Source: Utricularia gibba (Eukaryota > Plantae > Magnoliophyta). Taken from it: 64,000 nucleotides of DNA. Positions 1,311-47,272 of the stretch are shown here, piece after piece (positions within the stretch are counted from its first letter, which is position 1; each line of letters opens with the position of its first letter). A model generated the notes under the pieces. That model was not told the origin of the DNA, did not search any database, and saw only the letters and a list, made by a program, of their open reading frames with translations. The translations under genes and the position numbers were made by a program. The DNA is taken from the NCBI GenBank assembly GCA_002189035.1, contig NEEC01000019.1:558001-622000 (forward strand), given 5' to 3'.

Positions 1311-2729
1311 TTATTAAAAAAAAAGAGAGATAATTGACCTCTTAATAGAAGAAAGAAGGATACAAGGATTATGCATGTCAATTGAAGGAGAGGTTGTAGC
1401 TGGATATTTTATTGCCACGAGAAACGATTAAAGAACATAATAGGGATGTTATATATTACTTTTATTATGATTGACTTTTACTGTAATAAAATTTATAAGT
1501 CACTTCTAGATAAATAATATTTGATTAATATTTATTAAAAATTAAAAAAATGAAGTTGACATAGTTTAATTTTCTCTACTTTTATAATAAAGACAATATT
1601 ACCCTTCATTATTAAATAATATTGAATATGAATGTTTTTATTTAACAAATACGTACTAAAATAAGTGAATGAATTCAAACAAAACGACTTATTTTAGTGA
1701 TGTTGAAAGCCAGGAGAAGATAATACCCTCATATAAGCACAAGTAATTTTTTGAATTCGAAAATAGTGTATAATAAATATGCTGGTGATTATAAGAATTC
1801 ATTTGGTTCGAAAATGAAAATAAATACTTTTTTCTCCTTTTAAAATCAAATTATAAGTGACTTAAAAGTAGAAAATTAAATTAATTATAAGTATCACACA
1901 AAACACTTATATAAGTTTTATTTTACTTTGATTTAGTTTAATTAACGTTGGAGTAGTGTGTTTGTGTTGAATATGCATGTTTGCTATGAAATCCCGTGTT
2001 ATTTACATCTATGCTAAGTGTGTTTAGATTTAATCTGGTTTTATTGTGTTTAGGTAGTAAATTCGCTTTAATCAAAACCCTAAATTTGATCATTTTTATT
2101 ATTTTCATGTGTTGTCTATAAAATATATATTATTTTCATACAACGTTTTATTTCTTGAGTATTCAGAATCACTTCGTAAAAATCTTATTGTAATCCAGTG
2201 TATATATAAGACATATATTTATAAATTCATCGTTTTTTATGGATGAATTTGAATTTATTACTATATTTATTTTATTATTAAATATTTATGAATCTTGCTT
2301 TACAGATATTTTAATGGGATGAATTTTATTGACATGCTTATGAAAACAAAGAAAAAGAAATTGTTTTGATCACATACCAAAAAACAATCTCAAAAAATCA
2401 TTTCGATCAGATCAAAATCATCATTTTTGTACATTTTTTAATCATTATCAACTATTAAACCTTGATTATTAGATATTCGAAAATAAAATTTTTATGACAT
2501 AACACTTTACAAGATTCAGCAGAACGTGAGTACCTTTCAATGCAATTAAAATAATAAAAATATATGAAAATATCGTGTTCTAAATTATGATAATAGTGGT
2601 CTACATTAATATCATAATACGTAGATGTATTAAATGCAAATCGTTCCTTCAAGCCGTTGTGATAGTGAGCATTATTTATTTATTTATTTATTTGGATTAT
2701 TAAACCTAGGTTTAGGGCCAAGTACGGAG

Positions 2730-2990
2730 CACTCATCCATGAACCGTTGACCGGATAAACGAACCCTAACGTTAGGGACAAAAAGCGATTACCAATGACC
2801 GGTTTTCTTCCCCTGAGTTGGCATAATGTATTTGCACCATCACCATATTCAAATTTTCACTGAAACCGTACGATTATAATTTGAAATACTACGGGACAAC
2901 CGTGTTCTACGGTTCGGTAACCGAAACCGGTCCATCGTTTCGGTTCGAACCGGAGAGGGGACCCAACAATGACCAAAACTAGTGCGAACA
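2730..2990. repeat. AACCG/CGGTT-rich patch (hAT-like subterminal remnant) upstream of TBL copy 1; counterpart at ~31100-31330
   Basis: Dense GAACCG/CGGTTC motifs including GGTTCGAACCGGA, which also occurs next to the left TIR of the hAT element at 8779. No TIR/TSD pair found. Confidence 0.4.
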
Positions 2991-3594
2991 ACCCACCAGA
3001 GTGTCCTGCCGGGTAAATCAGAAATACAGACTGCGGAGTCTCTTAAACGGCTTCCTTCATTTTTAGGTAATATAATATAATATAATATTCTCTCAAGTTT
3101 TCAAGGGACAGGAATTGTAATAAATAAAAAATAGTAATAAAAATAATTGAGAAGGGTTTTGAATTTTCAACAAACACTTTGTCTTTCTTGAGTGTCCAAT
3201 TACGCCACTGCTTTAAAGCCGGTATTTTCGAATGCTTTTTTATTATTATTTGTCTATTTTGGAAATTGCCCTGTGTTGAAAAATTCAAACACGTTGGGAA
3301 GAAAAAAAATATAATATTTTTTAATTTTGGTGATTTTGTTTTTTGAGAATTTTTTTTTATTCTAATTTGGAAGTTGGAAACCGTTGAAAAATTCAAGCGC
3401 TGGGGATGAATATTTGCGTAAGATGAATAATTGTATATATTTATTTGTTACCAGAAAAATGGCTGAGAGGGCGCGAGCATCGAAACATTGGCGTGTGTTA
3501 CAGAAGAAAGTGAAGAATCGTGACGAGAAAGTGGAAAGCATTTGGATTTGCGTCTCCTTGTCTTCGTCTCCGTATGAGCTCCGAGAAGAAGAAA

Positions 3595-5124
3595 ATGGCG
3601 AATCTGAAAGTGAAATCGCAGTTTCTCGCTACCTTCTTCCTAATACTCATGACTATTTCCGCCCTCGTTCTCTCCGCTAAACGCGGAACAGTCTCGAAGA
3701 ATCTCGAACTGGAGAGTCGTCATGAACAGCAGCAAGATGCAATACGCCCAGATTCCTGCGATTTGTCTTCTGGGAAATGGGTTTTGGATGAGGCGTCCCC
3801 TGTTTACGGAGAAACGGAGTGCTCCTTCATGATTGATGACTACGCTTGTGAGAAGTACGGGAGACGAGATTTCAAGTTCCGGAGATGGAAATGGCAGCCC
3901 CATGAATGCAATCTTCCGAGGTTTTGTTTTTCTTCTTGAATTTCTTCTCCCCAATTTTCATTAACCTGCGTCAAAAACAGGTTTAACGCGACAGCGCTCC
4001 TGGAGAAACTTAGAGGGAAAACGCTGATATTCGTCGGGGACTCATTGAACAAGAATCAGTGGATTTCTTTGCTTTGTTTGATTGAGTCTTCTGTTTCCAC
4101 GAAATCGATCACCAGAAGAGATAATCTCTTCACCTTCTACGCCACCGTATGCCCTCGGATTCATTCTTGTTTTTCTGGGTGGTCTTTTTATGCGAACTCT
4201 GGACCTGTTTTCGTTCAGGAATTCAATGCCACGATTGGGTTCTACTGGTCACCATTGTTGGTCGAATCAAACTGCGACAATCCCGAAACACACAGGATCA
4301 AAGATCGTGTGATACGAATCAGTTCCATCGAGAAGCATGCTAGATATTGGAGCGATGCTGACATACTCGTGTTTGATTCCTTCGCCTGGTGGCTGGAACC
4401 AACCATGACTGTCATGTAAGGCCTTCTTCTTCACGGTATACCCTGCAATTATACTGTAAAAAATGGCGACATGGCAGAACATGAACTTTAATCCATTGCT
4501 ATGAATCCCAACTTTCTTTTTGGAGAGGAATCCACTTTATTTAAATGCAGGTGGGGGTCCTTCGAGAGCCCATACTCGATCAAGAAGCGCGTCCAGATGC
4601 CGCACCGGCGGTACGAGATGGTCCTGGAGACATGGTCGCAGTGGCTCGAGATCAACATCAACCGGACCAAAACCAGGCTGTTTTTCAGGAGCCTCTCCCC
4701 GTTACACCTCTTGTCAGTTGCTGAAACTACGTGTTTTCTTTTGATAAACTGAATTTCACCTATCTTAATGGTATGCGTACTGCAGCGGCAAGAGTTGGGG
4801 CGAGCCGATGAACTGCTACAACGTGACGGAGCCGATTGGGAAGCCCGACTACTGGGGGTCATGACGGATGTGGAGATGATGAGAGCATCGAAGATGGCTG
4901 TGGATAGATTGGCCGGACGGGGACTGCGAATTGAGTACATGAACATAACGCATTTGTCGGATCTTCGGATAGACGGGCACCCTTCCATTTACCGGAAGTT
5001 TCACCAGCCGCTGTCGGAGGAGCAGATGACGGAGCCCACGAGCTACGCCGATTGCGCACACTGGTGCCTACCGGGGGTGCCGGACGTTTGGAACCAGATT
5101 CTATATTCTTATGTCATCAACTAA
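3595..5124 (+). pseudogene. TBL34-like: TBL34-like O-acetyltransferase, copy 1; 1-bp deletion in exon 5 (or homopolymer assembly error)
   Basis: Exons 3595-3920, 3981-4146, 4219-4415, 4551-4712, 4786-5124, all GT-AG. N-terminal TM segment, CDLSSGKW, CEKYGRRD, WKWQPHECNLPRF, GDS and DCAHWCLPGVPDVWN motifs. The G5 run at 4854-4858 (G6 in copy 2) shifts the frame to TGA at 4862-4864, upstream of the DxxH motif. Confidence 0.9.
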
Positions 5125-5639
5125 ACTACAAACTCCAAGGATTTTGATCATCAGTCCGGCTCACGCAGTTCTCTGTTTTGCTGCTCGCCAGGGACTTTGT
5201 TCACACAAAAGAAAGAATACACTTTTTTCCAGTGAAGTTAAACCTTTTTACTGCTGCCATACAAAATGGTTCAACTTCTAAGAAGAAAGATGGGGCAAGT
5301 GAGACAAATGGCCGTTCTCTCTCTACTCGGTAAGATGCCCCTGTGTCTTGGGTAGGCTTGCTTTTCCTAGTTTCATGTTTTCGGCTATTAGTCTTATGTA
5401 CTCACGCATGCAGACATTTAATTCCTATTTTGTCCCTAAATTAATAAATAATGTGCAAAGTGATCAGAATATACGACCCTAGCCAAATGCGCTGTCCATT
5501 CCTAGGTCTAGATGAACTTTAAGTTCACCCCAAAACATGTGTTTACACACATTAAATTTACTAATACTAATTTTGACAATTTTAATTATTTTACTTCACC
5601 TAAATCTTTATCCTAACACTTAAAATACTATGAATATGA

Positions 5640-8160: not shown

Positions 8161-10196
8161 TAAATTTTGCATACTTCCACGTGTCTTGTTACAGTCTTTT
8201 TGTAACGTCTCCTAGTCATGGTCCATGAATAGCAGGCTACTTCTCGCGGATTTTGATGAAGAGCAAGGTAAAGAGCACTATTTTCAACCCTATCGGTTCG
8301 AGGAAGTAGCAAATAGTTTGTGACCGAGGTACCGCGACAATGGACAGATAGTGGCCTCTTACCTGCCATTGGTCATTGGCAATAACTCGGCACACAGGTA
8401 GAATACAATTTTAAAGACAATCGATGGCATTCCTCTTGTCTTCTCAATTATTCAAGGGGGAACCACATGAGGCTATTCCCGTGGCCCCTTGTCAATTAAA
8501 GTCTAAGGGAGAGTAGGCTATTCCTTATTCCTATAACCAGCTATTCGGAAGAAATTAGTAAAAACCGAGTAAAGGATAGACAAAAGGAAGAAACAGAGTC
8601 CATTTCCTGGGAATTGCGTCCCGTAGTCAAGGTCCATTACTTGCATTGTAACTTTTATTTCTACACTTCAAAAAACTCTTTTTACAAACATGTGACAATT
8701 TGTAAAAATTTAGTACAAAACACTTTTCGTAAAACTTAACTCTATGAGATCGACACTTGTACTATGCTTTATTGTGTTTAGAGGTGGGTTCGAACCGGAA
8801 CTGCGGTTCAAACCGAAACCGTCGGTTCCGGTTCCGGTTCGGTTCTAAGGGATGGATGTCCGTACGGTTTCGGTTCGGTTCGGCATAATTGGAACCGTGG
8901 AACTGACGGTTCCAAACCGTGAACCGTACGGTTCGGATTTAAAAATAAAAAAAATTAAAAAAATTTAGAAAAAATTAAAAAAATTTAAAAAAATTTAAAA
9001 AAATTTAAAAAAAATTTAAAAAATTTAAAAATATATATTATTTTTTATACTTTTCTCAGGCACACATACGAAGGAAGTGGGTGCTTGAAAAATCTTCTCA
9101 AACAGTGATGGGGTCTAAATTGATTTTCACCTTTAACAAACACCCTTTCCCAAACACACTCACAACAGATATGGGTGTCTGGAAAATGGTCTCAGGTACC
9201 CTCACGACACACTATCTTAAATTACATACACTTATTTTTCATCTTCTAGATTTCTTTTGTTCATAAATGACAATATACATCCATGGCTTTTGAGATGGAG
9301 TATTCATTGTCTTCTTTGAACCAAGCCCATGTGTATCCCACATTAACGCTACCTATGAAATAAATAATTTGATAAGAGTCCAATACATGGACGCGGATTA
9401 TATAGAAACGATGCCCATGTGTATCCTGTATTAACACTACGTATCAAATAAGTAATTTGGTAGAAATCCTACACATGAGGGAATGTGAGTGTCTGGAAAA
9501 TGGTCTAAGCGATAGACGAATATTCTTTATTTATTGAAATTAATGTATAGTAATTAGGATATATAAAATCATTTCATTTTCAAATTTTGATATTCTAATT
9601 AATGCAGCAACAAATTTTTATATTTATGAAAATTAAGAATACTTTCAAAGATTGCGCAATCCCCAAATTTCGGGTACGGGTGCCTAATTTTGCATTTCTT
9701 GTGCCAGTCGCCCACATTAGCGATTTTGGGTTCCTCAAAATTGGAGTATTAATTACACGATGGGTACGCATCGATTCAAACGAGCGGCACACACCTTGTC
9801 TGAAAACAACGGAAGCTATTATCGACAACTTACGAAAGTAGGGATATCATTGCGTGTAATCATTAGCTTATGATTTGGTGTATTAAACCAAATCCCCACG
9901 CACCCATACACAACGCTACACATCACCACCCCACTCCCCACGTTGTCAATTAAAACAACCATAATCCCCACCCATATGGTAAGAAAATTTTCTTACCTCT
10001 TTCCCCCCCCCCCCCCCCCCCAGCCAAAAGCAACCGAATGCCCCACAGTCCCATCACCTACTTGTAGTGTTTTTTAAATTAAACAAGGTAAGTGATTTAT
10101 TTTCCACCATGGGTTGCTGATCTATGTTCCAAATTGAAATACCTTGTCCAGTTATTGTAGTTTGATTTTTTATACAATTCCTATGGGTGTTTGTAG

Positions 10197-11908
10197 ATGC
10201 ACATTTCTGAAAAATTGAGAACTAGGTTCTTGATACCGGGTGAATATGAGATTTGGGACAAAGAACCGGATAAGTTGATTGAGGATGAAATTCCAAACCA
10301 TGTGAGTCCAATGGGATTTGCCTTAAGCACGGAACATTTTCGTTGTGGTTTGCGCTTACCATTATTGCCCTTTTTAGAAGAAATATTAGAATGTTTAGAG
10401 ATTCTTTTATCTCATTTGACTCCAAGATCTATCTCATATATGTTGGCCTTTATTAGTATTTGTGAGGAGTTATGTCTTGAGGTGGAACTTCGCTATTTTT
10501 TTGCTGTGAATGTATGCTTTAGAACTCTAAACAAGAACCACTACACCTTAAAGGGGAAAAAAGGGTTGGTGCTAGTAAAGAATGTGAGAAGAGGATTTGA
10601 AGAATGGTGGACAAGTTTTGTTTGGATATATCCTCCAATGGAAACCAAATTTCCTCAAATTTATACTAATTCGAGCGAAGTAGGCAATGCGAAAGGTAAA
10701 TCTTGCTTTGTATTGTTAGAAGAAATATGAATAAAAATATTCCATATTTTTATTGAAATATTCTATATTTGTATTGAATGTTTTTATTGAAGATATTATG
10801 ATTGAGCGTTTTTTTTAATCTACTATTATTAAAACTATTGTTATTGAATATTTTTATTCAATACCTTTTTCGAATATTTTTACACTTATCATGTTGAATA
10901 TTCTTATTCAATATTTTTGTTGAATATATTGTTAATAAATTTACTTTTATTGTAGGATTTGATACCTTGTCCAAGAGGGATATACAAAATCTCATTCTCC
11001 TCTTCTCAAGTATGCAAAGGAGTTTTGTTGACATTTTACCACCATTTGTGGATGCACTGAGGACAAAACGCTATTGGTGTGGTGTGTTGAAAAATCCTAG
11101 AGTCTCCCAAAAGAATGAAGACTTGTCTAAGAATGAGATGACACAAGATGGGAATGATGTTGAAGGGGACGAGCTCACACATGGTCTCGATGATGTCGAT
11201 GATAGACTTGAATTTATAACAAAGGAGAATGAAGAGCTTCACTACAAGTTGAATTGGTATGAGAGTCGTTGGGTATATACCGGACCTCCTTTTAGTGCTT
11301 CTAAGCCTCAACGAAAGCTGATTATCTTGGATGTAAATGGTGTGCTAGCAGACATCGTTTACAAGGCTGGAGCGTCAAGGTCACGAATCACTTCAGATAA
11401 AATCATATATGGCCGATCAGGTACGTTAACACAATACTTAATTTTGTGTGTTATGTGCATTCACGATTTGTGAGATATCATAGGTAACTTTTCGTGCAAA
11501 TTATGCAATCTTTCTACGTCCACATGCCCGCGATTTTATTAGGTGGTGTTTAGATAATTTTGATGTAGCTTTATGCTCATCCCGTGGGGGGTACGTGTGC
11601 TGCATCTTTTTTTTTTGTTGGTATTTAGAATTGGTGCAAACACTTGCAATTGATTTATTTTGTAGGGAGCAACTACAAGCAATCACTAAATGGGTCTTTC
11701 CACCTTCATTATTCGACAAACTCATTTTCGTATGGGACCAAACCATGACAACGGACACCGGCTACGTGTTCACAACAATCCTAGCAACACGGTTTACATA
11801 AAGGAGTTGAGTCGTGTATGGGCTGTCAACAATGGATTGAACACAAGATATGACCATCACAATACCTTATTAATTGATGATTCACCTCACAAGTCAATGA
11901 AAAATCCG
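10197..11908 (+). pseudogene. Cargo gene A: Transposase_28-like domain fused by splicing to a coiled coil and an FCP1/NIF-like HAD domain (decayed)
   Basis: Exons 10197-10695, 10956-11420, 11509-11590, 11666-11908. Exon 1 has CGLRLPLLPFLEEIL..LSHLTPRS; the exon 1-2 junction is in frame (AAA G|GA TTT). HAD motifs RKLIILDVNGVLADIVY, FLRPHARDFIRWCLDNFDV, FVWDQT, TLLIDDSPHKSMKNP. Exon 3 acceptor reads GCAA, exon 4 has a frameshift near 11770, and no final exon was found. Confidence 0.8.
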
Positions 11909-12069
11909 GTAAGTCATTTATTTTCAATTAGACAGACACTTACAAAATGTGACATTTTGATTATACTGTTGAATTTATTTTAAAATAAATGAATAAATTA
12001 ATGACAATACTTACGAAACAACTTATTTATACTGTATGACGCTTATTTTGATTTTTAAATTAATTTACA

Positions 12070-13350
12070 GGGACGGCACATACATAAAAATGTTTCTTGT
12101 AGGGGCCGCCAAAATATTGAAATACTATTAAATTTGATTACGGATGTGAATTGTTTATTAAACGATTTCCAATTACAATTGGTATCCATATTTTAAAAAA
12201 GATTTTTTCGTGCATAATTATTTTAAATAATTTTATGCTAAAACACAGAATTATAAGTGTGTTGTTGACATAAAATCACATTTTAATTTAAAACATTTTT
12301 AGCAAAAATATGATACGAATGTAAGTTATTGTCTAACTTAACCTCAGATGTTGTGAGGTTTAGTAGAGGAAAACATTTGAGATACAATATACATATACTT
12401 GTGTAAAAAACTTCATTTTTATAATCATACCTTAAATATTCAGCACATTACAATATTTATGATGATAAGCGTCATCATCAAGGACCATTTATATTAAAAA
12501 AAACATAAATTTCCACTTCATGGTTTAGGGTTTTCAGGGTTTTAGGGTTTAGGGTAAATCAAATATCTGAAATATTCCTGCCTTTTTAATATGTTGCAAA
12601 TATGAAATTTTGCACGGCACATACGTAACATTGCGTTTTGTAGGGGCGGCAAAAACAATTTATGGAAACACTCTCAAATGTACTTACGAATGTGAATTGT
12701 TTATTAAATAATTTACAATTCAAATTGACGTCCATTAGATACAAAGTATTTTTTGTATCGAATTTCTATTTATAATCTGAAATTACAAATATATTATTCA
12801 AAGGCAATATAATGACTTTAAAGTTTATAAATAATCATCCACATTTACATTAGACACAAATATATCTTGTTCTCTCATTTAAATGTCAAATATTTTGATG
12901 CTTTATAAAAAAAATATTGAACATATATTTGCAAAGAAACGTGGTTTTTATTATTTTTAACGTTACAATATTGGTGATGATAAACTTCATTACTATGAAC
13001 AAAAACTACTAAAATTTTTAATGTGTAGTTTAATTAAGGGTTTAGGACAATTAAATGTGTAATAAATTCTTGTCATTTTTAAAAAAAATGTAAGGATAGT
13101 TGGATTTTGAGAAGGTACATTCAAACACACGTAATGCGTATGTGTCGCTGAAATATATCTATAACATTTTTTGTTTATAATTTTTAAAATACTGAAAATT
13201 CAAAATTTGGGACGGCACATCAAACAATGAGTATTTTGAAAGTGCCGCAATTTTTTTAATTATTTTAAATAATTGATTTAGACTATATATGGATGTAAAT
13301 TATTCTATGCAATATGATTTTCTGAAAAAGTTGGCATCCATTATATAAGT
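12070..13350. repeat. Three degenerate tandem units (~540-600 bp) inside the hAT element
   Basis: Units start at ~12070, ~12612 and ~13209 with (G/C)ACGGCACAT...(GGGGCCGCC/GGGGCGGC/GTGCCGC), followed by (C/T)G(G/A)ATGT(G/A)AATT and ATCCAT/GTCCAT motifs; a telomere-like GGTTTAGGG patch lies at ~12523-12555. Confidence 0.7.
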
Positions 13351-13692
13351 GTACAACCCTACCGAGTTTACATCACCTTTTGCTGCATACAAAGGCTCTT
13401 CTTATTAGTGTCGTTGCGCTCCTGAAAACCTAGAATTCATCGGCTTAAAATCGGGTAATCTTGTTGTTGCAACTTACATTATTTTTGTGAAATGTATTCT
13501 ATGCATTTTTTGCTGTAGTATGCGTTGTATATTAAGTTGGGTTTAGTTATTACAAATTTTCTTTTCGTATAATTATGTATTTAGTTGGGTTTAATTGCAT
13601 TTTTCATCGTTAATATCATGTTTGTTTTGCTGTTTTCCATTTCCTTATTTTTAGAATTTCATTCTTATTATGTATCCTTTATTGATTAGGGA

Positions 13693-14900
13693 ATGGATAG
13701 ATTTCGTATTAAATACGTCATCCCAACCGATTGGTTGACAATTCCTGCTCCGCAAAACACACCTCTTGACGCCAATCCCCCTCATGAATGTCCCAATGCT
13801 TGGCTTGTGTCTCGTAAAACATTTGATGCTGGTCTTAGGCTACCTATTCATCCCTTTGCTCTTGATGTGCTCACCTATTTGAGATTACCTATTGGGTTTT
13901 TAGCACCATCTTCCTATAGTATTATCTTAACCTTCTTACACTTGTGCGAAGCAGAATATGTAGAACTTTCCTTGTCAAATTTTTTTGCATTATCTCTTCC
14001 AAAAAAAACTCCTACTGGAATATGGTATTTTCAAGGATTACCAAATACTAGATTTCATCAAAGTCTACTCAAATTCGAAGTAAGTCTTTTTAATTTACAT
14101 TATTTTTCCAATATGTTATTTTACTTATTTATTTAACATTATGATAGCACTTCGAAACATTCATGGTGTCATTGAGAGGCGGTCTGCACCAACATCAAGG
14201 CGAAATCGTCATCAGCTTGTTGTTTATGAACAACCCATTCCGCTAAACATCAATAGCAATGAACAACAGGTAAATAAAGTAGGAATATTATTTAAATTTT
14301 TAATTTTTTCTTCAAATAAATAAGGTTTGCAATATAAAAAATTTTTTGTGTAGGAGAATTCTGAACAACAAAATGGAGATGAGGAGAATGAAGTGTCTCT
14401 TCATGAGAAGGCTGAAGTGTATATTAATGAGGAGCTCTCGGTTGCACGCCAACATGACAAAGAACTCATTTTAAACCAATATAAACACATTCAACGGATG
14501 GAAAATGAGGTAATAAAAATGAAACTTATTTTGCTAATACATGTGATAGTTGTTTTTTTATGTTTTCTAATTTAGTTTTTTTTCTCCTTTAGATAGATTC
14601 AGAAGAACAAAAACAAAATGGACGATTCGGTAGCACAGCAATCTATATACAAGGTTGAATTGAAGATGAAAGGCGATGAATTGATTGCTGGACAACAAAA
14701 ATCTATCAACTTTCAATTGGAAATAATGAGGCTGAATGAAAAAATACAGGTGTTAGAGGAAGAATTTCAACTTCACAGATTGCAAGCTCAATTGAATGAA
14801 AACGATGTTGTGTTTTTTTTTTCAAAGAGACATACCTTCTACAAGTGCGGGCACAAGCAAAGATAAAGAAAGAGGTAGAGGCAGATCCAAAAGAAAGGGA
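13693..14900 (+). pseudogene. Cargo gene B: second Transposase_28-like domain followed by spliced coiled-coil exons
   Basis: Exon 13693-14079 (FDAGLRLPIHPFALDVL..FLAPSS), then 14148-14269, 14354-14509 and 14597-~14900. Exons 2-4 join in frame and encode an E/K/Q-rich coil; the exon 1-2 phase does not match, suggesting decay or a wrong site call. Confidence 0.6.
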
Positions 14901-17049
14901 AAAAAATGAAAAGGGTCCGTAACAATGTTGTGTTTTTTTTTTCAAAAGATTTGACTTATTTTGTAATATTATATTTCAATCGTGACAATCTAATTATTTC
15001 GCAAATGTCGCTTAATTTTCTAATAACTAATTGACATTTTTTACAAAAATTATAAAATTAAACATAAAAGCAAACATACAAATTACAAAAGAGATAATAA
15101 CAATTTTTTTTTCAGTAAAATTGAATTATTTCGTATTATTATGGCTAGCTCCTACCAAAGTACTTATTTAATAGGTGCCGTAACAAGAAAATTATTTCAT
15201 ATCACTTTTTTATACGTCCTACGAAATCCTCTAATGCATAGATATCGCTTCAAATTTTTAATAACTGAATCATGTTTTTCTAAAATATTATAAAATTGAA
15301 CATAAAAAACAATCATACGAATTAGAAAATGGACGATAACAATATTTATTAATTTTTAGTGAAATTAACTTATTTTGTATTATATTATATATTGAACTTA
15401 TACCAAATTATTTATTATATATTGAACTTATACCAAATTTATTTATTTCATATTATTATATTAAACTCTCACCAAATTACTTATTTTACAGATGATGTTA
15501 ATATAATATTGTTATGTTTCATTTTTCTGTGAAATTGTAAGACTAAATTCTTTAAATGTATTCTCGTTTTAATAATAAAAAAATATTTTCTCAGAAATAT
15601 TAAAGATTTAAACTAAAAATAATTTATTAGAAATATAGTTAAAAAAATTCTTTTTTGTACATATATATTAATTTTATTTAAAATAAAAATTAATTCTTTA
15701 AATATTTAATATTTATTAAAAATTTCACTTCCAGACACCCATAAGGATTCATATGAGTGCCTTGAAAGCACCTACAAACAGTAACCGCGGTTCTGGTTAC
15801 GGTTCAATTCGTAAATCTCGGTTTCGGTTTTGAATCGAAATCGTTCGTACGGTTCCGGTTTCAGTTTGTTTCAAGCCTTCCGGATACGGTTCCAAACCGA
15901 AACCAGAACCGTTACCCACGGCGAACCGCGGTTTTGGAATCGACGGTTCGCTGGAACCGTTCGGTTCCGAACCGAACCCAGCTCTAATTGTGTTTTACGT
16001 GTTTTCTAAATTAAAATTTATTGAGAAAACGATACGCAACATAGAGATAGACCGAAAACCCGAAAAAGCTTCAAAATCTCTAAAAGCCTCACTCAAAAAT
16101 GTGAAGAAAAGAGAAATACCTGGGAAGCTTGTGGACAGCACCGAGTTTCGTGACGGTGGAAGTGTGTCAGAGTAGGCGGGAGCGGAGAACACAAAGGATG
16201 TAAGAGAGCAGTGAAAGGAGGTGAAGTGTACAATGAAGGGAGGAGAGGCAATTTATAGAGGGGATTCTCAGAACATGAAGGGACATGACGATTGGGTTAC
16301 AAAAAATGGACAGGAAAACGTGGCATGTCTTGGATGCAACATGTGGCGAAGGAACTTACTAAATCGGAGGGAACTACAAACAGGAAATCGATATATGATT
16401 AGACATTGAGTTGGTGATTTTGATCTGCCAATCTATCGCGAGTACTCATCTCGGCAAATCAAAGAGACTGAATGGTGGGCCTTAAATTGGCATGTGCCAC
16501 ATGGAGGCGAGCCCGGGAGGTACTTATAAATCTATAGTTGGTGGATGACAAAATCAACTTCCCTTGAACGAAGTCAGTTGGAAAAGGTCTCAAAAGCATT
16601 CTAACAACCTACTATAGGTTACTATAGGTTGACAAACCAATAAGTGTTAGAACTAGGAAGCAAAGGCCATTTTGATAGTCTGAAAAGTAGCCAAATTATA
16701 GGAATGTCAAAGCAATCGACAGGTATTTGTTAGCAGGACCATAGTATGGCTACCAAGCATAGAAAGCAATTGACAACTGCAGAATTTGATTGGATCGGCT
16801 CTTCCTATAAATATAACAAAATCTGAAAAAGAAAAGGTTGAACTCCCTACATTTTGAGCTCGTATTCCTCTCCTTTTTTCCGTTAATGAAACCCCCTCTT
16901 CTGACGAGCTTTGACAGCTCCGTGGTTTTTTCATCTTATAGTGGTTTCCACTTTAAAACTCTTGTGTCTTTTTATTTTTTTTTTGTTCTCAAAACCAAGC
17001 CAAAATCGGAATATAATCTATCGGAGTGTGTCAATCCACATTCATGACT

Positions 17050-18380
17050 CGAAAATCGGTCAAGTCCAACAGGACCAATTTTTGACCTCAACAGATGGTG
17101 AGCATACTTATGTTCTATTAATATATGTGGATGACTTACAACTTGTTCGAAATTTAATTGAAGAAATTCAAGTGTTAAAGATTGCACCTCATAATTGGTA
17201 CACTATTAAAGACTTGGGAGATATCAAGTATTATCTCAAGTTTCATATTTATAGAAATAAAAAAGAAATATTTATCACTCAAACTGTATATGTAACTCTA
17301 CCATTAAGGATTTAAACTTATCAGAGTATGATGGACAATTTGATCCATTTCCAAGGGGATTCAAATTTTCAAAGAATCTAGGAAAAGAAATTCAATCGCC
17401 ACTAAAGTATTGAAGCCTAGTGCGGTGCCTCCTATACTTAGGTTTCTCTTGGCCTGACCTATCTTATTATGTACAAACACTTAGTCAATAAATGAAATGA
17501 CCTAATGAACAACATTAGCATGCAGCAATTTAGGTTGCAAAATACTAGAGTGAGATGCTCAACAATGGATTATTCTATCCATTAGAGAAAAAAAAAAGAC
17601 ACTTAGTGCATTATGTGACTTCGATTGGGCAGCATGCCCATTAACCGAAGATCCCTAATAGGATATGATATATTCTTTAGATTTACTCTAGTATCCTAGA
17701 AAACAGAGAAGCAAGCAATTGTATCTAGATCGGTGGGTGAAGCTGAATATGGAAGCATGGCAACCACAACATGTGAGCTGAAGTGGATAACTTACGTGTT
17801 GTAGGAAATCGAGTATCTCAATGATGGAGCAATTCCATTGTATTGCGATACCAAGGTTGAGATTCAAATAATGGAGAACCTTATTTTCCACGAGCAAACA
17901 AAGCATATAGAAGTCGATTGTCATGGTAAGAGAGTGCTTTGGGATACTTAAATCTGTACATGACCAATAAAATCGCAAGTCGTTGATCTCTTCACAAAGC
18001 AGTTGGGAATGATGGAGTATGAACAATTTCTGCAGAAGTTAGGATTCATGGATTACAAGGCTATTGGGCTTGAGGAGGGGGTGTTAATTCACTCAATAGG
18101 CTCAATGAGATGGACAAGTGAAAAAACTGGCAAATAGCAGAAAAACGAAAAAGGAGAAAAACTCATAACATAAACCATGGAATAAAGCAGCAACAACCTT
18201 GTAATAAATATTGGAAAAGTTCTCATCCACATGTATAAATAGACATCAATGCAATATAATGATAATGGAATAAAGCAGCAACAACATTGTAATAAATATT
18301 GGAAAAGTTCTCATCCACATGTATAAATAGACATCAATGCAATACAATGATAATGGTAGATAAATTCTAGTTCTCTAACA
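17050..18380 (+). mobile_element. Ty1/copia 3' remnant (RT-RNaseH, PPT, 3' LTR 18082-18380)
   Basis: LIYVDD and TIKDLGDIKYYL RT motifs; RNaseH-like DFDWAAC and FHEQTKHIEVDCH; PPT GAGGAGGGGG ending at 18081; LTR TGTT...AACA. Confidence 0.8.
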
Positions 18381-20332: not shown

Positions 20333-20469
20333 AATGTGTCTCTTGTTTCTAACAAGAAGCTGGCATCATGTTCTGATATTTAAATGCATCGTCCAATGTA
20401 TTTGATGTGTCATACCAATAAAAGATGATATCTTTATGGAATCAAGTGCATGAGCAACAGAGCTGTCAA

Positions 20470-21538
20470 AAATTGTACTTGCTTTGGGAAGTGAGAGGCG
20501 AAAGAAAGACTAAAGGAGAGAGGATCGCAAGAGTTAGCAGCACATACACGAGGGGGTTTCTCCCCCAACTCGAACACGACGAATACTGGAAGGAGAAGGA
20601 AAAGAAGGGTGATTTTTTAAAGAAGAACATTCAACGTGATGAACAAAGAACAAGACTTAGTCCAGCGCTACTGTTCCGGCCTGTGAACAGTAGCAGACAG
20701 AAATCAGTACTATAACTGCTTTATTTACGTCTCTTGACATTTTTAGTTTTTGCAACTAACTCTTTTACAATGTTTTGGACAATTTCACTGCTTTATGTTA
20801 ATGTTAACATATTTTACTTTCTAAGTATGAGTGGCTAGAATCATAAGGGTGCCTTAAGGTAAAACATGGTGGTGTGGACCTAGAATTCATAATATAATTC
20901 ATCATTGTTTCTTAACTCTTATTTCTATCATTCTATGGGTAGACCTAAGGAGGAAAACAAGTAGTTTCACAACCGAGATGTTTGAATTAGAAATAGACCA
21001 ACAAATCAAGGCAAGAGCAATAGGTGTTAGTGCAGAGTAGAACCAATAGAGCCGAGTAGATCTAGTTCTATACACTTTACATGTAGGTAGACCTAATTGC
21101 AATGTTGGTGATGATATTAAGGATTAGTTTAGCCGAAAATATGAGAAATGACCTAGGTAAACTTAGGTTATTTGAAGTTGTGAGTGCAAGAACATAATAG
21201 ATTAAATTAGACATTTTAGTACCACACCACCTACAAACCCTTAAGGCATCTTAATATTACTCTGAGTTAGAACCAGTATTTGTTATCTTCCGCGTTGAGA
21301 CCTGATCTTGTTTACTGAATTTGTTTACTACTGTTAGTTTGAGCCTAGATTAAGACCTACTGTTGTTTTGAATTCTACATCTACTGAAACACTTAGCAAG
21401 CACAAACTCTTTGTGATCGACCCCGAAATCCACTATACAAGTTTTACAAATTTGTATTTTGTATAGATTAGGGGTTATAAATTTATTTGATACGAAATTT
21501 TTATTTTTGCAGTAACATTAGGAAATTTCCGTTTATCA
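20470..21538 (-). mobile_element. Partial LTR, copy A of a local LTR family (5' end TGATAAA-GGAAATTT)
   Basis: Reverse complement aligns along its length to 47273-~48370 and to 58089-58600; 3' end missing. Confidence 0.8.
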
Positions 21539-22030: not shown

Positions 22031-23059
22031 ACACACAACAAATCCTTCTTTTTTGCACTTTCACCTCCAATTAGTATCACCTCCAATTGTATTTTCTTTG
22101 GTTTCTTTGGTGTGGGAAGCTATTGAAGCAAACGATCCTCCAACATCGAGGATGCCTCATCAAACCAATTAAAACGACATGAAGACTCTCTTTCTAAACA
22201 CTATTATGCTTTAAATGCACTCTTTTCCTTTGTTGATAAGTCAGTATTCTATCATATTATGGCCCATAAATCTCCCCAGCTAAGTGGAAAAAATTGGGGG
22301 AAATTAGTATTTTACACGTGTCAGAGTTTTTTATTTGCAATTTACCGGAACTTTTTTTCTAATTTGTAAATTACCTTACTTTTTTATTTGTATTTGCGAA
22401 ATGCCTTAGATTTTAGGATTAAATTTGGTAAATACATGTACTGGAGGAAAGAGGTTGGCAAAATACCATAACTTTTTGTTTTATTGGTATTTTACATGGG
22501 TTATAATTTTTCATTTGTAATTTATTGGAACTTTTTGTTTTAATTTGTAAATTACTTATTTTTTTTATTTTTCTTTGTAAAATGACTTAGATCTAGAAAT
22601 TCATTTATTGAACCGCATGATATTGTCTTGACTATTTAAGAACTCCATAATATTCAAAAATAATTATTGTTATTGGTGAATAAAAATATATAACATATTT
22701 ATAAATATCCACAATCGTTATTATCATTTAAAATTTATAATTTTCATATAATAAATTAAATTTTAATGAACATAACCATGAGTGCTTATAAAGAAAAAAT
22801 GATTTATTATAAAACTAAAATATTTCGAATTAAAATATTATAAATAAAATATATTATCAATTTTGATTAAAAACGTGATTTCAATTGTTTTTCATAATCA
22901 ATATTAAATATGAGTAAACAATTTTTTTACATAAATTTTTAGTAAAATATAGATAATTTGATGTAATAATAATTTATAATCATAAATAAATTAATATAAT
23001 GAACAGAAAATTAATTCAAGTATGAAAAATGATTAAAACATAAACTATCAATGATGTAA

Positions 23060-24470
23060 TACGAATAATAGTATTCAAAAGATCAAAATGGATATATAGT
23101 TTTTAAAAATAACAGCAATCAATACATATAACACTCAATAATACGTTTATAAATTTGCCAATGTGGATCAGTCTCATCAATTAGCTTCTGACCGAACCGG
23201 AATTAGCTGACGTAACTTCCCACATCATTTGCATCTAGAACACCCTGAAGGAACAAATGAAAGACATTGTAGGGGGCAAGCAAATTGTCCATACCTTCAG
23301 TGCATTTCCATGAGATAGGAAATATTGCATTGTTAACCTAGAAAAATTGCATTAGATAGATTTATAGAAAAAATTTAAGAATAAAGAAATTTAATAAACA
23401 ATTAAAAGTCACTAACCGGGTTTAAAATCGATTTATAAGGAGAGTCATCCACTAACAATGTGTTGGTAGAGTTGTATTTGCCTTCAAATACTTCATTCTC
23501 CCAAATATATCGTAGAGGTTTCAACTTCATAGTATCAAATGCGTTATCGATCCGCCTCTCGGAAGTGATTATGCAATTGCTTTGATCCCATAAAAACACC
23601 AAATTCTTCTTGATATTATCTCCAAGAATGTACTCTACCAATGGCTTGAGTGTATCCCTATCACCAAAAATATTATTAGTAATTGAACACAAAATAAATC
23701 AATTTAATTTCATAATACAATATTTAAAAAATGACTTACATTCCCCTCGATGACCATATTACTACATCAAAATTTGCCATACACCACTCCAAAAAGGATC
23801 TAGAATATGGTCTTAAATACACTGAAAACAAAAATGGTGAATTTTATATGTAATTTAAAAAAATCAAACAAGTAAATATACTAACCTCCTCGTCCCTTAA
23901 TCATAATTGGAGGCGTAGGGTCTCATCTATTTCTACGATATACGACATCGGCTAGTACCCCATTAATATCTAAAACGAGTAACTTCCGGCACGTCATGGA
24001 AAAATAGTTAGGTTGCACAATTAAGCTTCCAGCTCTTTTTTCGTAATTACGAAGAGTGCTAGTCAATCTCTCTATCTCTGATTGTGCTTCTAATAACTCC
24101 AATTGTAGTTTTTGTACCTATAAATAAAATAGTAAATATGAGAAGAAAATATAAAATTTATATAAATCATTTAAAAATAAGTAACATACCATTTCGAGTA
24201 AGGTGTCAACATGTGTAGAAGATGAAAAATCATAAGGCTCGGGAATGTCTCGTGGCACATTTTCGACATTCGGAATTTCCGGAGATAGTTGTCGTCGAGA
24301 CGCACTCCTTTTAGTGCCATACCAAATACGTCTAGTATTTCGAGTATCCATAAATGGTGACTCAACTTCTTACCATTTCAATTGTTTACCATGAACCAAG
24401 ATAATCAAAGAAACTCTTGACGCTTCACCTAATTCATTGACACCTTCATAAAAATAAATGTTTATTATCT
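23060..24470 (-). pseudogene. MULE accessory gene: coiled coil plus full-length FCP1/NIF-like HAD domain (two nonsense codons)
   Basis: Exons ~24470-24190, 24117-23886, 23821-23740, 23657-23417, 23337-~23060, all GT-AG and in frame. Reads SPFMDTRNTRRIWYG...VQKLQLELLEAQSEIERL...RKLLVLDINGVLADVVY...VYLRPYSRSFLEWCMANFDVVIWSSRG...FLWDQSNC...TLLVDDSPYKSILNP|VNNAIFPISW...FGQKLIDETDPHWQIY. Stops AGA-TGA and AGC-TAA. The 5' end is uncertain. Confidence 0.85.
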
Positions 24471-24708: not shown

Positions 24709-27700
24709 TCACTTAAATGTATGTTTTACCTTTTCAAAGAGCGAAGTACGGCGTGATCGCGTCCCTTGAACCGTAGTCTCATCAGAGAATGGCACTTGGG
24801 TTGGATAGGAAAGGGACAATGATAGTCGACCAGCCGAAGTAGTTGCCCTTGGCTCTGTAGGTTGTCCTCCCTCGAATGATGAATGTCTGTAGGTTGGATT
24901 CGCAGGCGAGAGTACATTGGTTGGAAGGATATCGTCTTGCCTGACATATGTGTCTTCTTCATTAATTTCTGTAACTCTTGACTTTCGCCTTCCTCTTTGT
25001 TGGAAATCTACCGGTCCTCTAAATCTGGTTGTTTGGTCACGACCCAACTTTGTTCTTCTTCTTGATGAGTCAACAACCAGCTCGAATGCTGATTCTGCCC
25101 ACTGACTCTCATCACGTATAGGGCGAACTTCACATTTGTATGTATTCACTAAGTTTGATGTCAGGTAATAATCACTTGTCTTCAATATAGGATTTAAACG
25201 GAATTGATGACAACCCTGTGGAATAAAATATTAATTAGATTGAGGATTCTTAAATACTAGTACTAACTGATTTTATAGAGCTTACCATTTGCGCATGAGA
25301 ACAAGGATATCTGTCTATCTGCCATATACCGCAGTCACAAGTTTGATCTCGAACATTGACTCTATATATTCGCATGGAATGATGCCCCCAAGATTGTACC
25401 TCACATATTTGACTGTTCACATCATATGATATGCATTTAAGCATTGTTAACTGATTCAATGCTTCTTGATACTTCATGTGGATTTTGTATCCCAAGGGAA
25501 TCCCATTTTTCTGCATTGATAGTGCCTCTGATCTATAACGTACGAAATATTCACGTGTCTTTTCGAAGGTCACCTACAAAGTTATGGTAACATCAAAATT
25601 TATTCAATAATGAAATTAAATTGCAACTCGTATAACCTCTGCAAGTGCAGTTGGAGGTAAATGTCTTGCTGATCATAAAACGCTATTCATACACTCAACA
25701 TGATTTGTAGTCATGAGTGTGTGCCTGTATTTTAAGAAAACATGTTAGCTAAAGTAAGTAAAACTAACAAAAAAAAACGTTTTACCGATGTCCACCATCA
25801 TAAAACAATGTCCACTCCTCTTTGGATATTTTTTCTAAATAGTGATAGGCATCAATCGAATGTCTTGCTATCTCACTCATGGCCATCCTGAAATCAGTTT
25901 CGGTTCTAGCATAAGAAGCTCTTTTGATCCATTGTCCCAAAGCTTTTGATTTCGAATGAACATGTGACATACAATTTTTTCTGATATGGAAGTTGCACCA
26001 TCGATGTATGCCATAGGGAGGGCTAAAGCGCTTGTAACTATCATAAGCACCAATAATCCCAGAAGCACGATCAGAGATAATACATACATCTTTCCTTTGA
26101 CGAATAACATGATTGGCAAGATTATAGAAGAAAAATTCCCAATCCTCAGTTGATTCTCCATATGCGAATGCATAGGTGACTGGGAAGACACAATTGCTAG
26201 CATCAACAGCAACACAAATCAGCAACTTGTAGTTGTATCGTCCATATAGGTGAGTTGCATCAACACAAAGCACGGGTCGACAGTATTGAAATCCTTCAAT
26301 AGCAAACCTGAAAGCCCAAAATACATTTCGCAACACCTTCTTCCCATCTAGATCACCACCATAACGCCATATCACAATTGTGCCTGGGTTTTGAGTGCGA
26401 AGCTCTCTTATATCGTGGTAGCTCAGTAGTGGAAGTTTCCCACATTCCATAATGAATCTCAGAGGCTCTGGTTATACAAGCCCATGCCTGCCAATATGAT
26501 ATCTCATAATACCATTGCTGCTTTACATAAGCTTGCACAAACTTAACATCTATCTTTCCATCCAGAAGTGAAACCAAACGTGGTGCGATGAACTTGATTG
26601 TAAGATTAACATTGGATGTTGCAAGATCAGCTGTGACATCGCACGTATGCGGTTCTACAAGCTTTGAGATCTTCCAAGTGTTAGATCGTGTCTGAAATCT
26701 TGCCCAGAGATAAAATGGACAATTAGAAGTTTTTTCTTTCGTCTGACGACAAATGCAAGCATATGTCTTTTTATCACTTGCCACCACACGGGTCTCTCGA
26801 TGTGCTATAGAAGTATTGTAGAGAGCAACTGCATCAATAAGGGTCTGTTTATCTGGAAAATGCATCCCTTGTCGTAATTGATTTGATCCCTCAGCATATG
26901 AATCATTGTGAACAGATATATCAATATCATCAGCATATAAGAAGTCCATTTGATCCGGTGATTCAATTTGAGTTTCAAAACAAGTTTCTGATGGATGATC
27001 AAAAATCCCTGGAATTTCATTATCCTCAAAGTCAGATTCATTGATATCTGAGGGATCATTATCAACATACATCGCCCCCTCTAAATCAGACTCTTCAATA
27101 GGGACTGTTGAGGTCTCATACGTTTGATTTACGTGGCCTCTATTATCATATATCTCATCTGAAACATATTCATGATCACCTGAAATAAAAGTTTAAATAC
27201 GAAATACTGAATAAAAAATAGTAATGTTAAAAAAATAGAAAGAGATTAGAGAATTTAATCAATACAAGAATGTGAAGATGGAATTCTAACCATAACGAAA
27301 CGAAGGCTCCCAAAAAGGATCAAATGGTGCATCCAAGTCTTGTGTTGGATAACTGCTATTGTTGCACCCCTCACTAGTTTGTTCGTTTAGGTTGAGCCGC
27401 CAATCTGCAATTATAAAAAAGTTCATGCTATTTTATATCACAACTTATGATAGAAAACATCAAAATTTTTCTAAATTTCACTTGGAGCATGACTACTAGA
27501 AATCTCATCCCATCGTGGGTTTGTTTTGACGAATAATTCAATTCCATACTCTGAATTGTTAGGTGATAAAATATAGCGTAATACGTCGGTACTTGAAATC
27601 TCCATAAAATTCGCATTTCCAGATTCCGCATCATAGAATTTTGCATTTAAAGTAAATTGAAAATGCAAGGGTGACATTTGGAGAGTCTCACCTATAATTT

Positions 27701-28525: not shown

Positions 28526-29988
28526 TCAAGTGAAATGTGAATAACACGTCTCTCTTTGAAAGAAGGGGCGCTTCCGGTTCTGTCGGTGCTTGAAACAATT
28601 TGGTCTTCTCCATATTACTATATCTCTAGAGCTGGCCGCTGCTTGTTAAAATAGCCAATGTAAATATAAGTTTTACATTATTATACAAAGCAATTTATAG
28701 ATCTAAGTTATTTTACAAAGAAAAATAAAAAAATATGTAATTTACAAATTAGAATAAAAAGTTTCGGTAAATTACAAATGAAAAATTAAAATAAATAAAT
28801 AATAATATAGCAATTAATTATTAATTTTTATTTCGTAAATAACTTATATCATTTATTATATTACATTTTTGTAAAAAATTTTAAATAGTTTAATAGTATA
28901 GGTTTCTTAATATCATTATTAATAATAAATTTTATTATTTAATATAATTTTAAAAACATTATACTTCATATTCTTTTGTTTTTTGTGTAAAAATCAATTT
29001 CTTCAACATTTGCCTATGCCAACATAAAATAATATGCCCATCATGAGTTTTTTTTATTTAAAAAATAAGAAGTTCAGTATTTTGCAAATGAAAACTCAGA
29101 TTATATGTAATTTTATAATAAAAAAAACTTTCAGTATTTTACAAATAAATGTAGTCTGACACAGACATTTACCAAATTTTGACTTGTAATACATGTAAAA
29201 TATTAATGAAATAAAAAGCTCCCGTATTTTACAAACATCTTTCTTCTGACACATGTATTTAACAAATTTAGCCGAAAAAATTGCAAGTTGATTATCAAAG
29301 AACCAATCGCACCCGAAAGATAAGTCTTCTAAATTTCAGAAAAGAGTTTGAGGGTTTACGTATGACTGAGTCTGAAAAGGTGAAGCAATATATTGATAGA
29401 TTAATGTTGATTATAAATCCAATAAGATTACTTGAGGTGTCTTCCTTTTCAAGCTGAGGGCCTTCTACAGGGCTCGTAGTTCTGGCAGGAGATAAAGAAG
29501 TTCAGGATTCTCTTATTGTTAAAAAAATTTCAGTAATTATACCTCAAAAATTTGATGCTACGATCACCTGAATTGAAGCTATATCTGATTTAACTGATAT
29601 GACCATTTCTGGCCTTGTTAGTGTTTTAGAATCTGCTAAGATAATTTTTATTGTTTCTTATTTGCCTCAAAAAATTCCGATATCTTGGTTTTCTGTTAAG
29701 CATTGTCATGTTGTGTTGTTTTGTGGTGTCAATTTGAGTCAGTCATTACTGAGTTCACTATCCTGCTTGCATGCATGATCCATTTAGTAGAGTAAACTTG
29801 TAATAATGAGATCTAAGCATTTTAGTATTGCATTTTCTTCATTTGCTCTTAAAGAATTAGAGTGACAAGTTTGTATGCAGCTGTTAGTGTGCATATTGGA
29901 TTTCTAAACATTAGGATCATTAATCTCATCTTAGGACAATACTACATCCAGTTTGCATTTAGTTTACATTTGGAAGTTCGAAAATAAG

Positions 29989-30065
29989 CCACCGTTTGTA
30001 GACATACCAAATATTAGTTGTATTTGATGTGGCACTAAAAGCAGTACGACTCGATGATAATAATC
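29989..30065 (+). pseudogene. Third fragment of the TE-borne HAD accessory gene (N-terminal motif only)
   Basis: Reads PPFVDIPNISCI*CGTKSSTTR, versus SPFMDTRNTRRIWYGTKRSASR (MULE copy) and PPFVDALRTKRYWCG (hAT copy), with identical spacing; clear nucleotide similarity to the reverse complement of 24285-24355. Confidence 0.6.
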
Positions 30066-30369
30066 ATGGTAAATTTCCAACGTCCAAGACGCACCAGAAT
30101 GAATATTCATCCTCATCAGAATGAATAGTCACGAGGCAAGAAAAGGTAGGCATATTTAAAAAAAAAGTATTTTGTAAAAATACAACGTTAAATGAAGCAA
30201 TGAAAACTCTAGGGATTCATCACTTTTTGTGTTTGAAATAAAGAGTAAGTTAGAGTTATAAGGTCTTGAAACGATAAGAAAGAATCAAACTTTAAGTTGA
30301 ATGCATATTGGCTAGAATTTAGTATAGTGCTAGAATTTTAAACCATATGATTAGAAGATAAATATTTCT

Positions 30370-33300: not shown

Positions 33301-33660
33301 GCATTTGTCGGATCTTCGGATAGATGGGCACCCTTCCATTTACCGGAAGTTTAACGAGCCGCCGTCGGAGGAGCAGATGACGGAGCCCACGAGTTACGCC
33401 GATTGCTCACACTGGTGCCTACCAGGGGTGCCGGACGTCTGGAACCAGATTCTATATTCTTATATCATCAACTAAACTACAAACTCCCAGGATTTTGATC
33501 ATCAGTCCGGCTCACGCAGTTCTCTGTTTTGCTGCTCCGCCAAGGACTTTGTTCACACAAAAGAAAGCATCCACTTTTTCCCAGTGAAGTTAAACCTTTT
33601 TACTGCTGCCACACAAACTGGTTCAACTTCTAAGAAGAAAGATGGGGCAAGCGAGACAAA
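30370..33660 (+). repeat. Copy 2 of the ~3.2-kb segmental duplication
   Basis: Aligns to 2130-5308; carries an extra ~160 bp at ~30570-30730 that is absent from copy 1. Confidence 0.92.
31945..33475 (+). CDS. TBL34-like: TBL34-like O-acetyltransferase, copy 2 (intact)
   Basis: Exons 31945-32270, 32331-32496, 32569-32765, 32901-33062, 33136-33475; continuous frame with TM anchor, GDS (GDSLNKNQW) and DxxH (DCSHWCLPGVPDVWN). Confidence 0.93.
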
Positions 33661-47200: not shown

Positions 47201-47272
47201 TAAATATCATCAGTTTTTAAACATTCCTCGGCTACGAAATAATTCCCCACTAAATATAGAGATGTCTACTAA

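Follow-up and report, generated by a model that had tools for sequence, protein, structure and literature searches.

A decayed gene combining a TRP28 exon with a NIF-like HAD domain in a non-autonomous hAT-type element of Utricularia gibba

Introduction

DNA transposons of plants are usually seen as consisting of a transposase plus, at most, purposeless captured fragments of host genes. Within this group, hAT elements are recognized by an 8-bp target-site duplication (TSD), YARNG termini, and subterminal repeats. Host enzymatic domains can nevertheless be kept by transposons, as in the case of the ULP1 protease of KI-MULE/CACTA elements. Similarly, orchid Ty3/gypsy elements keep a host-derived N6-methyladenosine (m6A) demethylase domain (PMC9289625). 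Another accessory domain, TRP28 (Transposase_28, PF04195), is encoded by antisense accessory open reading frames (ORFs) of Retand/Tat Ty3-gypsy elements, located between pol and the 3' long terminal repeat (LTR); a DNA-binding role has been predicted for this domain of unknown function, and all reported occurrences are in transposable elements of flowering plants (PMC11963269). The study describing it mentions neither a phosphatase-like partner nor a similarity to other known transposons (PMC11963269). A combination of a transposon-derived and a phosphatase-type domain is represented by the PMD-PP7 module, which acts on gene expression and transposon silencing (PMC7156037). Here we describe a gene, termed gene A, that lies within a hAT-type element of the bladderwort Utricularia gibba and in which a TRP28 exon is spliced in frame to a linker and a HAD domain resembling the NIF family (PF03031), together with a related gene, termed gene B, located in a nearby MULE. 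The sequence analyzed, called the window in the following, is a stretch of 64,000 nucleotides (contig NEEC01000019.1, positions 558,001 to 622,000, forward strand), and all coordinates refer to it unless another contig is named.

Results

Exon structure of gene A and its relationship to gene B

Gene A was modeled with four exons on the + strand, the positions of which are listed in Table 1 together with those of the other features. Exon 1 scored 38.5 bits against PF04195 (gathering score, 26.2), with residues 45 to 101 matching model positions 4 to 61 of 69, and the Atlas clusters nearest to this exon also represent PF04195 (0.96). A match to this family had been named as a test in the original prediction, which had recognized the domain from its motifs, and the assignment can thus be regarded as established. 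As had likewise been proposed, the HAD part is spliced in frame behind the TRP28 exon: the junction 10695/10956 is formed by a canonical GT..AG intron, and the reading frame is kept from exon 1 to exon 2. Gene A differs in its location from a typical TRP28 gene, since it is found between hAT termini and not as an antisense ORF between pol and a 3' LTR. The ATG of gene A immediately follows the sequence ttgtag, and an upstream untranslated exon is possible; a run of about 19 C residues is present at 10004 to 10022, approximately 175 bp upstream of the ATG. An AlphaFold2 prediction for the TRP28 exon, based on a two-sequence alignment, had a mean predicted local distance difference test value of 35 and was unusable.

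The motifs RKLIILDVNGVLADIVY (at 11312), TLLIDDSPHKSMKNP (at 11864), and PPFVD-7aa-WCG (at 11042) on the + strand have counterparts on the - strand at 23988, 23461, and 24357, respectively. Alignment of the proteins encoded by genes A and B revealed 42% identity over 140 aligned HAD residues, and the three introns flanking or following the 82-bp exon occupy the same residue positions in both (phases 1, 2, and 0). The description of A and B as homologous but diverged genes with common intron positions, intron phases, and an 82-bp exon was therefore confirmed. All introns of gene B are of the GT-AG type. Its fourth exon comprises 241 nucleotides (nt), compared to 243 nt in gene A, and an additional intron within the linker (24189 to 24118) is absent from gene A.

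Genes A and B share a linker that starts at a homologous splice acceptor

In both genes the HAD domain is preceded by a linker of about 120 residues. The beginning of exon 2 of gene A plus the linker was compared with exon 1 of gene B plus a relic located upstream of the gene B ATG, such that the relic sequence GVNELGEASRVSLIILVHGKQLKW, followed by a stop codon, EVESPF, and then exon 1, was aligned with GFDTLSKRDIQNLILLFSSMQRSFVDILPPF and the linker of gene A. The local alignment score was 70, compared to 26.9 +/- 4.6 for shuffled sequences (z, 9.5), and none of 5,000 shuffles reached 70. When the relic of gene B was omitted, the score for the linker was only 37, which was reached by 58 of 2,000 shuffles. 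The first aligned residue is the Gly whose codon is split by intron 1 of gene A, so that the alignment sets in at a homologous phase-1 acceptor; the possible acceptor of gene B (tttatgaag/GT, 24445-24444) has the same phase and is homologous to the site 10955/10956 of gene A. The relic and the last exon of the MULE transposase are no more than about 260 bp apart, and gene B has probably lost an upstream exon. We read this arrangement as indicating that the linker and its acceptor for an upstream exon are older than the split between A and B. The linker exon is represented by a third relic, which is heavily decayed and was detected as a 117-nt inverted match with 70% identity to 24253 to 24369 in the region of gene B exon 1. 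This relic is located beyond the inverted-repeat arms of the MULE, and HAD exons were not detected adjoining it.

These observations bear on the possibility that gene A is a Pack-type chimera, in which the hAT element captured an unrelated TRP28 exon and HAD exons 2 to 4 that happen to be joined in frame and never encoded a working protein. In line with such an origin, the element lacks a transposase, contains two different TRP28 fragments and internal repeats, and carries a gene whose last exon is missing, as is common among captured fragments; moreover, an in-frame junction arises by chance in one of three cases, and no homologue of the fused architecture was found. A counterargument is provided by gene B, which resides in another transposon superfamily, has diverged to 42% identity, and still keeps the linker from the homologous phase-1 acceptor and the same Gly codon, so that the junction would be older than the A/B split. 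In addition, both donor and acceptor of the junction are canonical. We therefore consider an accidental chimera quite improbable.

A stand-alone host-type gene has the same introns but lacks the linker

A search with an exon-4 alignment retrieved one 46-residue fragment (P0003; E value, 0.015), which led to four contigs (L001 to L004) of plant DNA in JGI metagenomes. These contigs carry a stand-alone NIF-like HAD gene, hereafter the host-type gene, which has neither TRP28 nor the linker and is next to an ordinary gene. It possesses the three introns of A and B in matching phases, and one of its exons likewise measures exactly 82 bp; two further introns are located at W/D and after RAL. Consequently, the shared introns and the 82-bp exon mark the gene family rather than a transfer from transposon to transposon, and in A and B they could equally stem from independent captures. 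Within the HAD part, identities are 42% for A and B, 36% for A and the host-type gene, and 43% for B and the host-type gene.

Independent captures, in which hAT and MULE elements copied different NIF-like HAD paralogues of the host, so that the introns and the 82-bp exon are a trait of the host family, are accordingly compatible with the structure of the gene on L001 and with the equal distance of B to this foreign gene and to A. Two features speak against them. The linker common to A and B is missing from the host-type gene, whose short N terminus shows no similarity to it, and the W/D intron of the host-type gene is absent from both A and B. Since the linker starting from a homologous acceptor is shared, the host-type gene has no linker, and the W/D intron is missing in A and B, a single transposon-borne ancestor is favored, and we assign only a small chance to independent captures. 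On this comparison, it is the linker with its acceptor, and not the set of introns, that appears as the real shared derived character of A and B. The original prediction had proposed an old mobile module shared by DNA-transposon superfamilies; of this proposal, the old homology holds, and the common linker favors a shared transposon ancestry, whereas the introns and the 82-bp exon cannot support it on their own because the host-type gene has both.

Gene A is a dead pseudogene

Gene A contains three defects. In front of the 82-bp exon, the acceptor AG is replaced by AA; an alternative AG at 11482-11483 was considered and rejected, as its use shifts the frame into a stop codon. Exon 4 comprises 243 nt, whereas 241 nt (as in gene B) or 244 nt are required. 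Its homology follows one frame up to TGYVFTTI and another from PSNTVYIKEL onward, indicating an indel at about 11772 to 11785, and the incoming frame ends at a TAA codon (11799 to 11801). Finally, no counterpart of exon 5 of gene B was found downstream of gene A by local BLAST. Because of the AA acceptor, the exon 4 frameshift, and the absent last exon, gene A is a dead pseudogene. Gene B has an in-frame TGA codon (23925 to 23923) and a TAA-interrupted relic upstream of its ATG; it has thus acquired stops too, and both genes are dead. An open frame across the whole HAD domain is consequently absent in A, with its three defects, as well as in B, with its TGA codon.

That gene A is a working or recently working gene, its defects being assembly errors or tolerated through a non-canonical acceptor and programmed frameshifting, is hardly credible: the perfect TSD and the well-kept termini imply that the insertion need not be very old, but the three defects are independent, the frameshift is outside any homopolymer run, no RNA run holding the gene A stretch is listed, and no gene product of the locus is on record (an exact look-up of the 177-residue exon 1 ORF gave no match).

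The HAD domain and traces of selection

Exon-sized pieces of gene A matched NIF with 12.0 bits (exon 3, model positions 37 to 61) and 17.5 bits (outgoing frame of exon 4, model positions 76 to 125). The 82-bp exon scored 19.0 bits in gene B and 22.6 bits in the host-type gene. The matches of A and B are collinear and are to NIF only. Motif I reads LDVNGVL in A and LDINGVL in the other two genes, B and host-type, with the first Asp retained and Asn in place of the second; none of the three sequences matches the catalytic motif D-x-D-x-T/V. The sequences CSS/WSS, IKEL/LKPL, and IDDSP/VDDSP, which from general knowledge of the family rather than from a structure we take to be catalytic motifs II, III, and IV, align in all three genes. 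The D-x-N-G-V signature thus appears to be a trait of a plant NIF subfamily that includes the host-type gene, and its members may have weak activity or be limited to the binding of phosphorylated partners.

The original prediction had suggested an alignment of the A and B proteins and a calculation of the ratio of nonsynonymous to synonymous substitution rates (dN/dS). The alignment places the introns at the same residues, as described above, but the ratio is not computable because synonymous sites are saturated. Specifically, the Nei-Gojobori method gave proportions of synonymous differences (pS) of 0.79 to 0.86 (0.79 for the HAD core) and proportions of nonsynonymous differences (pN) of 0.41 for the HAD core and 0.56 for the linker. 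For the suggested long selection in a transposable-element context, the pN of 0.41 below the saturated pS of 0.79 is only suggestive, and the selection cannot be assigned to transposons. Such values are compatible with a long period of purifying selection, within or outside transposons, that recently gave way to decay.

Homologue searches

Searches for homologous proteins with the exon 1 and exon 2 ORFs gave no match; these searches apply length and word filters, so that blanks say little. A full-library HMMER search with exon 2 (154 residues) gave only two matches, an F-box repeat protein and a bacterial cadherin/DUF285 protein; both are repeat proteins and were judged spurious. The Atlas assigned TRP28 to exon 1 and, weakly, NIF to exon 2, and no cluster contained both families. 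Sequence searches of the PDB with pieces of exon 4 or with a profile returned nothing significant, the sole relevant entry being UBLCP1 (3shq; E value, 1.1). The literature search found no paper that links TRP28 to a phosphatase or PF03031 to transposons, or that describes C-terminal domain (CTD) phosphatases in transposons.

The carrier element of gene A

Gene A had been described as cargo of a hAT-bounded element, and the boundaries proved correct. The terminal inverted repeats (TIRs) TAGAGGTGGGTTCG (8779 to 8792) and TAGAGCTGGGTTCG (15973 to 15986) are identical at 13 of 14 positions in inverted orientation and are flanked by a perfect 8-bp TSD. The pattern TAGAGSTGGGTTCG has exactly two matches in the window, which are inverted with respect to each other, compared to about 0.25 expected by chance, and the termini fit the YARNG start consensus as known in general for hAT elements. 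The subterminal motif AACCG/CGGTT occurs 16 and 14 times, respectively, in the final 160 to 190 bp of the two ends, with 0.23 copies expected per 160 bp. No hAT transposase ORF was found between 8779 and 15986, as judged by ORF length, which may leave short remnants undetected; the longest ORFs of the element (177, 168, and 147 residues) all originate from the cargo genes. The element is therefore non-autonomous; it is internally rearranged and must be mobilized by a transposase provided from elsewhere. At the nucleotide level, BLAST comparison showed no similarity between the interior of the element and the remaining window, and the cargo resembled neither L001 nor any other part of the window.

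A second cargo gene begins with a TRP28 exon that is 30% identical to exon 1 of gene A. It continues with coiled-coil-like exons to about 14900 (span, 13693 to 14920) and has no HAD part, which corresponds to the usual layout of TRP28 plus coiled coil. In the splice model 13693 to 14079, 14148 to 14269, 14354 to 14509, and 14593 to 14749, exons 1 and 2 are out of frame; this gene is either broken as well or spliced otherwise. Between the two cargo genes, a unit is repeated at 12073 to 12208, 12614 to 12754, and 13212 to 13253, with a period of approximately 540 to 600 bp and 74 to 81% identity, and plant telomere-like TTTAGGG repeats are present within the element at 12524 to 12555.

Genomic setting

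The window consists of AT-rich plant DNA in which transposons fill the interval between two duplicated TBL genes: the hAT element, copia fragments (RVT_2 at 16911 to 17312), and the MULE. The latter has inverted-repeat arms (22488 to 22606 and 28687 to 28804) that flank both its transposase ORF and gene B. An interpretation of the direct repeats of about 3 kb as LTRs of a giant retrotransposon around the whole region was ruled out, as these repeats are the TBL host genes. Clusters of AACCG/CGGTT also occur at 2801 to 3000 and 31201 to 31400, with seven copies each per 200 bp. They have a near-identical sequence (GGTTCGAACCGGAGAGGGGACCCAAC), are located in the TBL blocks upstream of the TBL ORFs, and may represent an old hAT-like end or a miniature inverted-repeat transposable element that was duplicated along with the genes. 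A repeat of about 0.5 to 1.1 kb is present in three copies (47272 to 48372, 58088 to 58606, and 20452 to 21538), one of them inverted, with 76 to 84% identity; these copies, which are unconnected with gene A, probably derive from a single retroelement family, as LTRs or as fragments.

Table 1. Positions of gene A, its carrier element, related sequences, and neighboring features
Feature	Position	Strand	Remarks
Non-autonomous hAT-type element, 7208 bp	8779-15986		TIRs, TSD, subterminal motifs; holds gene A, second TRP28 gene, internal repeats
Left TSD	8771-8778		ATTGTGTT; read directly; same 8 bases as 15987-15994
Right TSD	15987-15994		ATTGTGTT; perfect 8-bp duplication
Gene A exon 1, TRP28 module	10197-10695	+	166 codons + 1 nt; donor G/GTAAAT
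Gene A intron 1, TRP28/linker junction	10696-10955	+	Phase 1, GT..AG, AT-rich
Gene A exon 2	10956-11420	+	Linker (PPFVD..WCG, acidic stretch, short coiled-coil-like stretch), then HAD motif I (LDVNGVL)
Defective acceptor of 82-bp exon	11507-11508	+	AA in place of AG (ATGCAA/TCTTTC)
Gene A exon 3, 82 bp	11509-11590	+	HAD motif II region (FDVALCSSRG)
Gene A exon 4	11666-11908	+	HAD motifs III and IV (IKEL, LLIDDSP)
Second cargo gene exon 1, second TRP28	13693-14079	+	PF04195, 41.1 bits
Gene B, linker plus NIF-like HAD	23203-24351	-	Five exons, 852 nt, inside MULE: 24351-24190, 24117-23886, 23821-23740 (82 bp), 23657-23417, 23337-23203
Relic of 5' part of linker exon, upstream of gene B ATG	24352-24443	-	In frame with ATG, TAA-interrupted
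MULE transposase ORF beside gene B	25782-26447	-	PF10551, 55.1 bits
Third linker-exon relic	29980-30096	+	KPPFVDIPNISCI, stop, CGTKSSTTR
Duplicated TBL-type host genes (PMR5N + PC-Esterase)	2341-5308, 30746-33660		Direct repeat of about 3 kb, 90-91% identity
Host-type gene	L001 9323-11100 (also L002-L004)		Exons of 211, 82, 67, 186, and 61 nt, then last exon

Discussion

The features described above are best explained by the assumption that a transposon-associated gene composed of TRP28, a linker of about 120 residues, and a NIF/FCP1-like HAD domain has left gene A as a decayed copy without function, which is carried by a hAT element without transposase; we consider this rather probable. According to this reading, the HAD part would stem from an ordinary plant gene of the D-x-N-G-V NIF subfamily, having once been copied together with its introns and then attached downstream of a TRP28/coiled-coil protein. 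Purifying selection would subsequently have maintained the fusion in DNA transposons belonging to more than one superfamily, and copies such as A and B would have decayed later. The gene family probably travelled with transposons. The properties that may point to an accessory gene are the linker and HAD domain common to the hAT and MULE copies and the pN of 0.41 below the saturated pS of 0.79 mentioned above; the fusion with TRP28 itself is present only in gene A within the window. In intact members, TRP28 as a predicted DNA binder may take the CTD-phosphatase-like module to chromatin, where the module might remove, or merely bind, phosphates on the C-terminal repeats of RNA polymerase II-type enzymes or on another phosphoprotein and in this way could influence transcription or silencing of transposons. 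A role confined to binding, or a weakly catalytic one, appears as likely as true phosphatase activity, because Asn takes the place of the general acid Asp of motif I in all three genes (A, B, and host-type).

Several points weigh against this explanation. Protein searches found no homologue of the fused TRP28-HAD architecture, and neither an intact copy nor a transcript was found, in line with the lack of listed RNA runs containing the gene A stretch. The fusion was seen once in the window, in gene A, as gene B is without a TRP28 exon there. Each single NIF match of A and B is under the Pfam cutoff of 21.8 bits. Furthermore, the comparison comprises one foreign host-type gene, and with this single outgroup it does not establish A and B as sister genes. 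The function proposed for the family is wholly inferred.

A more far-reaching version holds that the TRP28-linker-NIF-like proteins form an undescribed class of plant transposon accessory proteins in hAT, MULE, and PIF/Harbinger elements, in which TRP28 brings a CTD-phosphatase-like or phospho-CTD-binding module that alters RNA polymerase II, IV, or V and aids escape from silencing, with intact and expressed members existing in this or related genomes. As a whole, this version is unlikely. If a gene consisting of TRP28 and a host-derived phosphatase-like domain did recur in several superfamilies, it would be a candidate for a transposon-encoded regulator of transcription or silencing, parallel to PMD-PP7 of Arabidopsis, and TRP28 would not be confined to Retand retrotransposons. 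Being dead, gene A cannot serve to test the regulator idea; its value is that of one more dated and well-delimited member of a gene family that is apparently an undescribed variant of transposon accessory genes.

When compared to known systems, gene A resembles TRP28 genes of Retand elements in its N-terminal domain, which in the latter is often followed by coiled-coil (Smc-like) regions (PMC11963269). It differs from them in being spliced, located inside a hAT DNA transposon, and fused to a NIF-like HAD domain. With Pack-type elements (Pack-MULEs and others), the carrier of gene A shares the non-autonomous organization with TIRs and TSD, the intron-bearing fragments, and the chimeric frames (PMC8903248, PMC13317346). 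In contrast to these elements, the cargo of gene A is itself transposon-associated through TRP28, and a strongly diverged version of the linker with the HAD domain is present in a second superfamily; this points to an accessory gene passed on by inheritance and not to a single capture event. In this respect, the proposed family is comparable to the m6A demethylase and ULP1 cases, in which a transposon lineage gained a host enzymatic domain and retained it over many copies; it differs in the enzyme class and in being known here from decayed sequence.

With regard to the HAD domain, the similarity of A and B to the CTD phosphatases FCP1, SCP, and UBLCP1 (PF03031) comprises the collinear NIF matches and the aligned nucleophile Asp of motif I, Ser of motif II, Lys of motif III, and DD of motif IV, whereas the D-x-N-G-V form of motif I in place of D-x-D-x-T/V lacks the general acid/base Asp. 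The combination in cis of a transposon-derived domain with a phosphatase-type domain is a feature that gene A has in common with the PMD-PP7 fusions MAIL3 and VvMAIL2.2 and, by extension, with the MAIN/MAIL1-PP7L complex (PMC7156037). The components are distinct, as PMD is not TRP28 and PP7 is a PPP-type metallophosphatase without the HAD/NIF fold, and MAIL3 has been domesticated as a host gene and evolves under purifying selection (PMC7156037), in contrast to gene A, a broken copy in a mobile element. By analogy, the PMD-PP7 module may nevertheless be taken as the nearest parallel for the chromatin targeting proposed here for the intact relatives of gene A.

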